A DNA stretch of 64,000 bases, taken from Paraphysomonas bandaiensis. Taxonomy: Eukaryota > Protista > Chrysophyceae. The DNA lies in contig CBFFRP010000236.1 in assembly GCA_965644295.1 (NCBI GenBank), forward strand, positions 1 through 64,000, written 5' to 3'. Below are positions 866 to 21,298 of this stretch, in pieces. The number at the start of each line of letters is the position of its first letter. Within the stretch, counting starts at the first letter, position 1. Position numbers and translations under genes: made by a program. The notes below the pieces were generated by a model. The model was given only the letters and a program-made list of their open reading frames with translations. It did not search any database and had not been told where the DNA came from.

Positions 866-3234
866 TTACGATACAATGCATGCATCATCTGGGTCGTGGT
901 GGGCAGTTTCAGCAGCACTCATGTTGCTTTCTCCTACAGCAAAATTTAGAGCATACACACCAACAAAATCTGCATTGTGACTTATAATAAGAGAGTTGAA
1001 TGTGATCAATAGCTCTAGGTGAAGCAGTGTTACGGATAAAATCACTATTAAGTACCTGGTGGGTCTAAAATCTCATCCTGCTTCTGTCTCGCTTCAAAAC
1101 ATACATCACAGGCCTATATACACAATACTCAGAATACACATACACAACACGTTCTGCTTATATAACATATATAATTTACATTCAACAACAGCTAATCACA
1201 TGCAAAATTAAGAAATCTTACCCTGACAATGTCTCCTGACGAAATTGCGATCCTGTGATCCGAGCATACAGCACACACTACATTACCACATAATCTACAA
1301 TGGTGCTTCCGATGGGTCATTGTGAATTCCGTGTGACACCTGACGATACTCACACTTAGCGATAGCCATATTAAAAGCAGTACATTATATAGCACTGACT
1401 GTGACAAAATAACAGTCGATACAACACATGTGGATTCTACAATAATCCGAATACAGTTTGAAAGACTATACCGCGAACAGCTGTGTATCAGCTGAGAGTC
1501 TTGCCATTGTTCAGACTTCTCTGTCATTCCTTTGTGTAGCCGCTCCGCCTCTTTTCGAATTCTTTCATCTTCTTCAGCTTTTAGTCTACATGTTGTACAC
1601 GTGAGTCAGCACTCTTCAGTGTCCCGTCTAATATATATGCTACCGCAAATTTACTATCCCACGTTACAGATCATATACTCTATGCAACTAAATATACAAC
1701 TGTCTGACAAGCGTTTCCTTTTCATCACTCGTAATACTCTCTATATATATGATGCATAGCACAGACACCTGCGAATTTCATCTTGTTTGGCCTTCTCTCT
1801 GGCCTCATCTCTCAATTTAAGCTCTTCATACACCCACCACTGGTGAATATCCACACGAGCGATACGTACTGTTAGGATAGAAGTCGTGTGTGGACTATGA
1901 ATAGCTCCCCTAAACCCTTTACCTAGCAGGCGCTCTCTGAAAAAAACAATTAGGGAGTTGAATGTCCATTACAGTGAATGACAGAGTACAAAATAACACG
2001 GTACTTTATCATAAACCATACAGAACATATATAGTATATTCTCAACCGTACAAGCACCCACACTTTCTGATAATTCTAGCACGGCATACCTGTGGTGCAA
2101 CGGTATATTCAGTACAGGTGCCTCTGAATCATCAGTTTGAACTTTCAGCGACGCCAATGGTATCGCAACCTTGGCTAAAACATTTTCATCTAGTAAATTT
2201 TTATCCATCACTGTGAAGTATATATATCCTCCCATTCTGCTAAACTCTCTGGTCAGAGGGAAAATAAATGTGTCGTTTTCATCAAAAGTTGGATTGTGGT
2301 TGCGCTTGACGATTGCGGTATGTCGAATCTTATGGTCGACTTCAACACTGACATAAGCATTCACAGGACGTTCGACAAGTCTATTCAAGCGACTTTTCAA
2401 ATTCGTGCAGCTCAGTACAGTAACACTGACCACAGCGGGCATGTTAGGGGGTTTGGGACAAAGGTATGGGGGCTCCAAAACTTCACCACCGATATCGGTT
2501 GGAACTAGTGTCGGCCGTTTCTGCGCTGTATTCGGTGATTGTGTGTCATTGTTCTGAGAAGGAAGCTTACGTCCAACATACTTTCCAAAGTACCAGTTCT
2601 TTTCCTGCTTCTCTTTCTGTCGCTCTGATGAAGCGCTGTCCGAAACTGGCATTGTAGTCGTTGTTGGGGTAACATTACCGCTTCCATTATTTATACTTTC
2701 CGACGTATCTTCATCAACATCCGTATCGTCATCAGAATCCTTCTCATACGCCGAAACTTTCCTATCAGTTGAAGTTGGATCAGTTGCTTCAGATGTTACT
2801 GGCGGAGGCAAAGCTCGAGCGACAGTATCATCTTTCATAAAATCAGATTCTGAAACATTTTTTGCAATCACAATATGAGTTAATATCCCACATTGCCATT
2901 CTAATGCAAATCCAATTGATACAGATATAAATCCTACTTTACCAGTTAACATGAACCGCACTTGACACTCATTTCTCATTTGTTTCATATTACTGATTGG
3001 TTTTTTTAATAATCCATTTGATGACATTTTTTGTTGTGCTTCATTTAATTTCTCTAAACAATTATGCATCCCACTAACTCCTCGTCCACTATTTAATTGA
3101 TCTTGTAATCTACAGTCAGGTGAGAGAAGATCCTCAATAGCAGTCAAATCATTGGATATGAACTGTTCCCAGAAGGTATGTGTCGCATCTGTTATAGAGA
3201 CTGTATTAGGAGAAGTGGAATGGAATTCTGTCAT
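866..3234 (-). CDS. Multi-exon protein: SnoaL/NTF2-like N-terminus, C2 domain, coiled coil, FYVE finger, C-terminal CaaX (CIVS)
   Basis: ORF 1969-3234 contains a C2 domain (VSVTVLSCTNL...NAYVSV...TAIVKRNHNPTFDE..FIF...FTVMDK). Downstream GT-AG exons give FYVE WQD..C..C...F....RKHHCRLCGNVVCAVCS...RACDVC. The last exon ends DDACIVS* (stop 866-868). Confidence 0.85.
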
Positions 3235-3853
3235 TGTTTAATGAGGTTATATATCTGGATATGGGGGGGTTAAGAGACTGATATGACCGCTGAGTATGTA
3301 TGTATATATATGCGTGTAGATATCACTGCTGGCTGTACTGCTATGCTTTGTACCTGGTCATATACCGCCCTATATATAGCAGTACCAGAAGTACGATATA
3401 TAGTATGATAAAACTGACGTATGAGTACGATGGTACGATAGAAGTTAAGTACACAAGTACGTACCGAAGTTTGTTGTCCATAGTAATTTTAGTAGGAATT
3501 CATGCATATCAAAATAGGGAATATATTGCCAAAATTCACTTAAAAAGCAGAAATTTTAAGACAAAATTACAAATTTACAATCAGAATTCACTGAATTCTC
3601 AAAATAAATTTCCGCAACCCATTCACGCACTAGTACAAGTAGAAGATGTACGTATGTGTATGTATGTATGTATGTATGTACGTCTATATAGTAAGTACAT
3701 CACATGCCTCATCTCTCATATATATACAGTATGAACTCTCCTCTCTATCATATACATCTAACTCATGCCTAAATATTCATCAATCATATCCCTGACATCC
3801 TATTCATTCCTCTGAATATCCTCTGCTCTCTTTCATCTGATTTAACCGCCTCT

Positions 3854-14979: not shown

Positions 14980-16156
14980 ATGGCTATTGGTAAGAGGGAT
15001 AATTGATTTTCTGATAGAGATGTGATTGATGTGATGTAGGTAAGAATAAGAGGCTCACAAAGAGCCGCAAAGGCGGAAAGAAGAAGGCGTAAGTTACATA
15101 CCACCTACACTCCTCTTATCTTATATATACACACAGTGTGGATCCATTCAGCCGTAAGGAGACATACAGTGTCAAGGCTCCTTCCATGTTTTCTACCCGT
15201 AACGCTGGAAGAACCATTATCACTAAGACTATCGGCACAAGTATGTATATCGTCAGGTCGTGTCATAGTAGATCATCTTATTGCTATTATAGAAATCGCT
15301 TCTGAGGGATTGAAGGGCCGTGTGTTTGAAATCTCTCTTGCTGATCTCAATGGTGGTGATGAGGCCCAGGGATACCGCAAGATCAAGCTTGTGTGCGAGG
15401 ATGTCAATGGATATGATGTGCTAACCAACTTCCACGGCATGGACATCACCCGTGACAAACTCTGCTCCCTTATCAGAAAATGGCAGACCCTTATTGAGGC
15501 TTTTGTTGACGTCCGCACCACGGATGGATACTACCTCCGCCTTTTCTGCATTGGCTTCACCAAGAAGCAGAGCAACCAGCAGGCAAAGTCCACCTGTTAC
15601 GCACAGTCTGGCCAGGTCCGCGCTATCCGCAGAAAGATGTTTGACATCATGACTGAGGAGGCTTCTAAGTGCGACCTCAAGGAGCTTGTTCAGAAATTGT
15701 AAGTTCATTGTTACATTTTATACTTTATCCACCTGCCTATTGCAGTCTATTCTGCCACAGATGTCATCTGTATGTGATGATTACTTCTATTTGCCATGGA
15801 CTGCAGACATTATACGATATTTAAGGAACCTAGTAGTGATTTATATGATCTACCGAGGGCCAAAAATATCATACATTTTTACATATATCACTATTTATAT
15901 TTTTCTAACGATATGTGGTCGTAGCATTTCTATGCCCGAGTCTATTGGATTAGAAATCGAGAAGGCTTGCCAGTCTATTTTCCCTCTGCAGAATGTGTGC
16001 ATTCGCAAGGTTAAGGTGCTTAGAAAGCCCAAGTTCGACTTGGTTAAGTTGATGGAGCTACATGGCGATTCTGGCGAGGACACTGGTGCTGCTCTGGATA
16101 AGGCCGCTGCTGAGACCACAGTTCAGGCTCTTTCCGGTGCTGGAGGCAGACTTTAA
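14980..16156 (+). CDS. RPS3A: 40S ribosomal protein eS1 (S3a); introns 14990-15039, 15089-15136, 15241-15292, 15699-15924
   Basis: Spliced [28 protein letters not shown]...[14 protein letters not shown]...[27 protein letters not shown]...[14 protein letters not shown]. Confidence 0.97.
15739..15878 (+). ncRNA. Intronic box H/ACA snoRNA, snR34/U65 (SNORA65)-type
   Basis: Hairpin 1 TGCAGTC...GACTGCA, box H ACATTA (15807-15812), hairpin 2 GATATTT...AAATATC, ACA (15873-15875). Pockets CTGCCAC/GCCA and AGGAA/GCC complement conserved LSU UGGC-U-U-GUGGCAG and GGC-U-C-UUCCU. Each 3' pocket strand starts 14 nt before its box. Confidence 0.88.
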
Positions 16157-20528: not shown

Positions 20529-21298
20529 ATATGACTGTGTGTGTATGTATGTATATACCATACTGCTGTACATATATACGTGTATGTAGAGAGGAACTTG
20601 ATGGGCGGTATGTGCGGTGCAAGTGTACTCATCCACTGACATATATGTACTGCTGTACTACTGTGTAGTAGTACACTACACTTATACATACGATATCTAC
20701 ATATAAATTAACTGTATTTCTATGTACTAAACCAGTTCGACTCAGCATGGACGGTCATACAATGCAAACCGCACCCGCTCTCGTTCCGCTCGCGGAAGTT
20801 AAGTTGCATCTGGCCCGGTTAGTAGTACGGTGGGTGACCACGTGCGAAGTCCGGGTACTGTCCGTTTTTGCAGTATTTTTTATTATTATCGTTTTTTCAT
20901 TAGGATAGTGGTAAAAACCCCAAGTTTTGTCACTCTTCTTTGGATATCCGGTACATCATATACTGCTGTAGACCAACGACAGAATATAACAGCCAGTCTC
21001 CCAATATACGGGCTACATAACAGTACATCATAAGGGTGCAGTACAGTGTACTCACTATGTACACCAACTACAAGGTACATGTCGACCTCCAGTCCTACTC
21101 TATGATGCTGTACCAGTCATATATAACCACACCAGACATGATCACACTCCATATACACATAGAATGATCAACACTTAAATATATCTATACCCTCCTATCA
21201 CAATCGAACCCATAATTAACACTGAATTCAAAGGAATGAACAAATAGATTACACTACACTACAATTCACGGATTAGTTACATATAATTAGAGTATATT

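Follow-up and report, generated by a model that had tools for sequence, protein, structure and literature searches.

A box H/ACA snoRNA of the snR34/U65 type predicted within RPS3A intron 4 of a chrysophyte

Within the window, that is, the whole stretch of 64,000 nt of Paraphysomonas bandaiensis DNA that was analysed, a gene for the ribosomal protein RPS3A (eS1) carries a single long intron, raising the question of whether this intron encodes an RNA of its own and, if so, to which family that RNA belongs and what it may target. The initial annotation had singled out this intron as the only long one of the gene (226 nt versus about 50), in agreement with the gene structure obtained here, in which the other introns measure 48-52 nt (Table 1). 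Matches to the Pfam family Ribosomal_S3Ae were detected in exon 4 (15295-15696, in frame, E 7e-50) and exon 5 (15926-16153, E 3.8e-8), and the closest named RPS3A sequences were those of chrysophytes, namely Mallomonas (90% identity), Spumella (87%), and Dinobryon (85%). Intron 4 is considered real because transcript-derived relatives (P0001, P0002, and P0019) read through the predicted exon 4/5 junction peptide; P0001 comprises 267 aa on a 912-nt contig, and contigs of ~0.9 kb with full-length relatives were taken to be transcripts. Elsewhere in the window, a 5S rRNA gene (Rfam RF00001, 100.7 bits) was located at 20747-20866 (+), ~5 kb downstream of RPS3A, and 5S rRNA alone was found when the whole 64 kb was searched with Rfam at gathering thresholds.

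The fold put forward in the initial annotation, a hairpin, an H box, a second hairpin, and an ACA, was recovered by MFE folding, by constrained folding, and by covariation, with the element delimited to 15738-15878. The unconstrained MFE structure consisted of hairpin, hinge, hairpin, and tail (-34.8 kcal/mol), and constraining the guide bases to remain open yielded the canonical two-pocket fold (-28.7 kcal/mol), which was also recovered for ten relatives. The single-sequence fold had a z-score of -2.2, which is weak when taken alone, with 5 of 200 shuffles folding equally well, and therefore the case was built on comparative data. The anticipated guide strands (CTGCCAC + GCCA and AGGAA + GCC, each with a 14-nt spacing) could both be read directly in the sequence, and the distance from pocket top to box was exactly 14 nt in both pockets (15793-15806 and 15859-15872). 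Besides this spacing, which agrees with the 14-16 nt that characterise the bipartite guide pockets of H/ACA RNAs, the hairpin-hinge-hairpin-tail architecture, the ANANNA H box, and the ACA are features of the H/ACA class. The register of the H box is ambiguous, in that ACAUUA fits both ANANNA and the 14-nt rule and the homologue-invariant motif AGAnA (15805-15809) starts 2 nt earlier. No UGAG CAB box was present in the terminal loops UGUAUGU and UUAU/UUUAUAUG, and the targets found, in a scan confined to rRNA, were rRNA, arguing against a Cajal-body scaRNA. In addition, contig C177 of the same genome was found to contain an open frame of 484 aa with a dyskerin DKCLD domain.

Table 1. Coordinates of the host gene, the predicted snoRNA with its parts, the further genomic copies, and the elements of relatives carrying an AAA box. 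Positions without a prefix refer to the window.
Feature	Position	Strand	Remarks
RPS3A (eS1) host gene	14980..16156	+	stop codon 16154-16156
RPS3A exons	14980-14989, 15040-15088, 15137-15240, 15293-15698, 15925-16156	+	tblastn with P0001 plus splice-site read-out
RPS3A introns	14990-15039 (50 nt), 15089-15136 (48), 15241-15292 (52), 15699-15924 (226)	+	
RPS3A intron 4	15699..15924	+	226 nt, GTAAGT...TAG; the gene's sole long intron; snoRNA host
Box H/ACA snoRNA	15738..15878	+	~141 nt; end set 3 nt past the ACA box (predicted)
5' hairpin	15741..15805	+	constrained fold
5' hairpin, lower stem	15741-15749 (UGCAGUCUA) pairs 15797-15805 (UGGACUGCA)	+	
5' hairpin, upper stem	15759-15762 (AGAU) pairs 15789-15792 (AUUU); 15764-15768 pairs 15776-15780	+	
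Pocket 1, 5' guide strand CUGCCAC	15752..15758	+	pairs LSU GUGGCAG, on the 3' side of the UU target dinucleotide
Pocket 1, 3' guide strand GCCA	15793..15796	+	pairs LSU UGGC, on the 5' side of the target U (equivalent of yeast Psi2826)
H box ACAUUA (ANANNA)	15807..15812	+	14 nt after top of pocket 1
3' hairpin	15816..15870	+	constrained fold
3' hairpin, lower stem	15816-15822 (GAUAUUU) pairs 15864-15870 (AAAUAUC)	+	
3' hairpin, upper stem	15829-15831 (CCU) pairs 15856-15858 (AGG); 15833-15836 (GUAG) pairs 15850-15853 (CUAC)	+	
Pocket 2, 5' guide strand AGGAA	15824..15828	+	pairs LSU UUCCU
Pocket 2, 3' guide strand GCC	15859..15861	+	pairs LSU GGC, on the 5' side of the target U (equivalent of yeast Psi2880)
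ACA box	15873..15875	+	14 nt after top of pocket 2
Second genomic copy	C129:19051-19193 (L030:1501-1643)		same intron (234 nt) of the second RPS3A gene
Third genomic copy	C319:121710-121852 (L031:1501-1643)		232-nt GTGAGT...CACAG intron
AAA-box element	L009:2523-2667		
AAA-box element	L019:2512-2657		
AAA-box element	L020:2569-2715		
AAA-box element	L023:2028-2186		
AAA-box element	L026:2491-2655		
AAA-box element	L041:1697-1892		

For comparison, RPS3A loci of relatives with exon-4 identities of 75-96% were gathered from metagenome and SRA assemblies and one NCBI assembly. Inspection of their introns, a check proposed in the initial annotation, revealed the same element in the same intron (after ...VQK-L/F) of 13 distinct lineages, or about 15 by another count; the intron flanks were unalignable among these relatives, and the snoRNA element was conserved. 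A MAFFT-only alignment of the first 11 homologues misaligned L024 and L026, which have long inserts or are remodelled, and hence a covariance model was built from 8 homologues and then used to realign, giving a final alignment of 16 sequences. Because of their remodelled 5' hairpin, L026/27 and L041/42 did not enter the covariation count. Across the 16 sequences, 92.3% of the cells were paired and changes on both sides occurred in 14 of 26 pairs, a score reached by none of 500 shuffles, and partner-slid controls paired at 24-44%; an earlier set of homologues behaved similarly. Helices 1-3, belonging to the 5' hairpin, were 93-95% paired with both-side changes in 8 of 18 pairs, and the lower stem of the 3' hairpin showed such changes in all five counted pairs. 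The guide strands CUGCCAC, (G)CCA, AGGAAC, and GGCC were nearly invariant and the stems varied, with CUGCCAC identical in 15 of the 16 homologues and AGGAAC invariant in all of them. The AGAnA motif was likewise invariant (16/16), and the sixth H-box base was variable (A in 10/16). Near-invariant guides combined with varying, covarying stems are the pattern expected of a guide RNA, and purifying selection acts on the predicted snoRNA element rather than on the intron. Within intron 4, the element is separated from the 5' splice site by 39 nt and from the 3' splice site by 46 nt.

Regarding the targets, the initial annotation had claimed that both pockets bracket sites in LSU rRNA, and the two strings were indeed found in the LSU rDNA of the organism itself. 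Pocket 1 matches UGGC[U]UGUGGCAG (7+4 bp) and pocket 2 matches GGC[U]CUUCCU (5+3 bp), both duplexes being wholly Watson-Crick with no G-U pairs. A bipartite scan with H/ACA geometry over 2271 uridines returned these two LSU sites as its sole matches, the scan covering SSU and the assembled LSU pieces of an rDNA that is fragmented in the assembly and lacks part of the 5' LSU there. On the LSU rDNA contigs C545 and C516 the sites read GGGAUAACUGGC[U]UGUGGCAGCC and, 54 nt downstream, GAUGUCGGC[U]CUUCCUAUC. The duplex of pocket 2 in the window copy has 8 bp only, at the low end for H/ACA guides, compared with 9 bp in the two paralogous copies. The sequence context of the first site, GGGAUAAC-UGGCU, corresponds to the A2451 region of E. 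coli, in accord with the identity of the sites given below.

As for the rDNA assembly itself, the LSU fragment of C516 (from 1026 upward) departs from C545 just upstream of the Psi2826-equivalent target (GGGAUGG|UGGCUUG versus GGGAUAAC|UGGCUUG) and aligns in Rfam with model positions 2391-3399 over 542 nt, as a truncated LSU. Probably this rDNA copy is broken or the assembly has a join here; a group I intron at this place was considered and rejected, since Rfam gave the truncated LSU match alone. On contig C525 (7957-10317), a complete SSU gene is immediately preceded on the same strand by LSU-like pieces (model positions 818-1347), an odd order for an rDNA unit that may reflect an assembly artefact or rearranged rDNA. 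The 13-nt target string of pocket 1, TGGCTTGTGGCAG, occurs once outside rDNA (C373:168447-168459), and by chance it would be expected ~2 times in 62.5 Mb.

These two sites point to a known family. Yeast snR34, a homologue of human U65, directs U2826 and U2880 of 25S rRNA (PMC5778458), Psi2826 being the equivalent of E. coli Psi2457 in the peptidyl-transferase centre (PMC11121408), and in the chicken U65 orthologue the 5' pocket is assigned to 28S-3858 and the 3' pocket to 28S-3912 (PMC2653536). The identification of the present sites with this pair (25S Psi2826/Psi2880), suggested in the initial annotation, was supported by the 54-nt spacing and the pocket order (PMC5778458, PMC11121408, PMC2653536): both LSU uridines are complementary to the pockets, and the 5' pocket falls on the upstream site. 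Yeast snR34 and the window snoRNA therefore share the design of a two-pocket H/ACA guide and an equivalent pair of LSU uridines 54 nt apart (PMC5778458, PMC11121408). No snR34-type family was present among the Rfam matches to a 331-nt scan at E<=10. The two RNAs differ in that yeast snR34 is an independently transcribed gene, whereas the window snoRNA is intronic.

Vertebrate U65/SNORA65 (Rfam RF00302) resembles the window snoRNA in its target pair 54 nt apart, its pocket order, and its location in an intron of a ribosomal protein gene (PMC2653536). The host is a different one, as the initial annotation had stated: chicken U65 resides in RPL12 intron 4, and vertebrate RPS3A hosts the box C/D snoRNA U73, with chicken U73b in RPS3A intron 5 (PMC2653536). 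Duplex lengths also differ, being 7+3 and 6+5 in chicken U65 and 7+4 and 5+3 in the window snoRNA. A match to the SNORA65 model (gathering score 70 bits), proposed earlier as a check, did not materialise, either in the whole genome or in the 331-nt scan at E<=10. The top Rfam match on the 331 nt was plasmodium_snoR27 (RF01602; 23.0 bits, E 0.28), which lies below its gathering score of 50, and the window RNA therefore falls short of Rfam membership in that family. This match nonetheless aligned over its full length (model 1-143) at exactly 15738-15878, and the snoR27 consensus shares GCCAC, AGGAACC, GGGCC, and the terminal ACA with the window snoRNA. The guide elements of the Rfam consensus alone suggest that snoR27 may have the same targets; a literature search found no paper stating the targets of Plasmodium snoR27. 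In microsporidia, a U65/snR34 orthologue was assigned by a similar logic, through pockets 14-15 nt from the H/ACA boxes and shared targets, and this guide is retained even in minimal eukaryotic snoRNA sets (PMC5499648); that RNA belongs to another lineage and another genomic context and is likened here by assignment logic. Since Rfam models give no above-threshold match, the window snoRNA is placed in the snR34/U65 family on the strength of its architecture and of the targets it has in common with those RNAs.

The covariance model built here detected exactly three matches in the genome (133-148 bits), of which the window copy scored highest (147.5 bits, E 1.5e-30 genome-wide), and Rfam at E<=1 gave no match on either of the other two loci. 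The second copy belongs to another RPS3A gene (C129), whose exon 4 protein is 99% identical to that of the window gene and whose DNA is 84% identical over the gene. The third copy (C319) lies in an intron whose surroundings contain stops in every one of the three frames, because of which its host is probably non-coding; no canonical C/D or H/ACA boxes were seen by eye in a neighbouring putative intron of this host (L031:1208-1394). The three snoRNA copies are 91-92% identical, and their intron flanks align at only 57-66%. The window copy can be told from the others by A15823 and the lower stem GAUAUUU/AAAUAUC. Its pocket-2 guide is AGGAA, compared with UAGGAA in both paralogues and UAGGAA or AUAGGAA in most relatives, and its pocket-2 duplex is therefore the shortest.

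With a probability of roughly 0.9, we consider that 15738-15878 (+) of the window encodes a canonical two-hairpin H/ACA snoRNA in RPS3A intron 4, one of three copies in the genome, and that it is a functional equivalent of snR34 and U65/SNORA65 (and, by consensus, of snoR27), because its pockets fit the sites equivalent to Psi2826 and Psi2880. The presence of three copies also admits the reading that the window copy is a redundant or decaying paralogue, with the active guide supplied mainly from C129 or C319, and both the short pocket-2 duplex (AGGAA versus UAGGAA) and the decay of the 5' guide in L026/27 and L041/42, which kept the rest of the element, are in line with it. However, the boxes, both pockets, and all stems of the window copy are intact, it tops the family model at 147.5 bits, and its host gene is of a highly expressed class, making such redundancy unlikely.

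Residence of the snoRNA in the RPS3A intron was common to a clade of relatives and absent outside that clade among the loci compared. L044-46 (77-78% identity) and L085 have an intron at the same RPS3A position without the snoRNA, and more distant RPS3A loci have no intron there; the intron position seems to be older than the residence of the snoRNA in it. L085 is a ciliate-like contig ending in GGGGTTTT repeats, and in it, as in L044-46, the RPS3A intron is short and placed at exactly the same codon position.

Some ribosomal protein genes regulate their own splicing through intronic structures. The conserved structure might accordingly be a cis-regulatory element of the RPS3A pre-mRNA, acting for example in autoregulatory splicing or protein binding rather than as a trans-acting guide, and such a role would suit an element that occupies one and the same site within this intron in about 15 related lineages as well as in the two RPS3A paralogues. 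This is very improbable, given that the third copy, 92% identical, sits in an unrelated intron surrounded by stops in all frames, that the invariant bases are the unpaired rRNA-complementary pocket strands and the H/ACA boxes at their 14-nt spacing, and that L044-46 and L085 have the same intron without the element. Chance resemblance, with two hairpins and short matches to rRNA arising by accident in an AT-rich intron, to which the modest z-score, the well-folding shuffles, and the stray 13-mer on C373 might be ascribed, is effectively refuted by the compensatory changes across 16 sequences, the exactly three genome-wide model matches, and the fit of both pockets to the documented snR34/U65 site pair and to nothing else in the scanned rRNA.

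Relatives with the same snoRNA vary in two respects. First, AAA was found in place of ACA, at the same 14-nt spacing, in six lineages, of which four (L009, L019, L020, and L023) are within the aligned 16 and the others are L026/27 and L041/42; AAA is a recurrent non-canonical ANA box in these relatives. Second, the 5' guide CUGCCAC/GCCA is gone in L026/27 and L041/42 through substitution or remodelling: in L041 (and identically in L042) the former guide strands now read CUACUUUU and GUCA, and in L026 (and identically in L027) the 5' hairpin is remodelled. Both lineages retain the 3' hairpin with its AGGAA/GCC guide, which points to decay or re-targeting confined to their 5' pocket.

At about even odds, the snR34/U65 guide moved into RPS3A intron 4 in a clade of chrysophyte-like stramenopiles and stayed there down to ~75% RPS3A exon identity, with extra copies, one of them in a non-coding host, providing a redundancy that may have permitted the loss or re-targeting of the 5' pocket in L026/27 and L041/42 and the repeated use of AAA. 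If true, this clade would lend itself, as a compact natural series, to the study of how snoRNAs switch hosts, how guides decay, and how far the boxes tolerate change.

As is established for H/ACA snoRNAs encoded in introns, the predicted snoRNA would be transcribed within the RPS3A pre-mRNA, dyskerin/Cbf5, Nop10, Nhp2, and Gar1 would assemble on it, and exonucleases would digest the rest of the spliced intron to leave the snoRNP. The 5' pocket (CUGCCAC + GCCA) would then clamp LSU UGGC-UU-GUGGCAG and present the first U for isomerisation, at the equivalent of yeast Psi2826 and E. coli Psi2457, and the 3' pocket (AGGAA + GCC) would act likewise at GGC-UC-UUCCU, the equivalent of yeast Psi2880.

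The window snoRNA belongs to a known, near-universal family and has a lineage-specific host, and it does not represent a new mechanism. Among the papers searched there was no snoRNA paper for chrysophytes and nothing usable on stramenopile snoRNAs, and the present analysis adds to this lineage a confidently assigned orthologue of a guide that is among the most conserved in rRNA modification and that Rfam thresholds miss. The new covariance model detects this snoRNA cleanly and could be reused for the annotation of stramenopile genomes. The hosts, RPL12 in vertebrates, RPS3A here, and a probably non-coding gene for the third copy, fit the known movement of snoRNAs between highly expressed hosts, and the recurrent AAA 3' box together with the decay of a single pocket in relatives provides small but concrete data on the design tolerance of H/ACA RNAs. 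The value of the finding thus lies chiefly in annotation and in a small evolutionary series comprising a host switch, multi-copy redundancy, pocket loss, and the AAA box.
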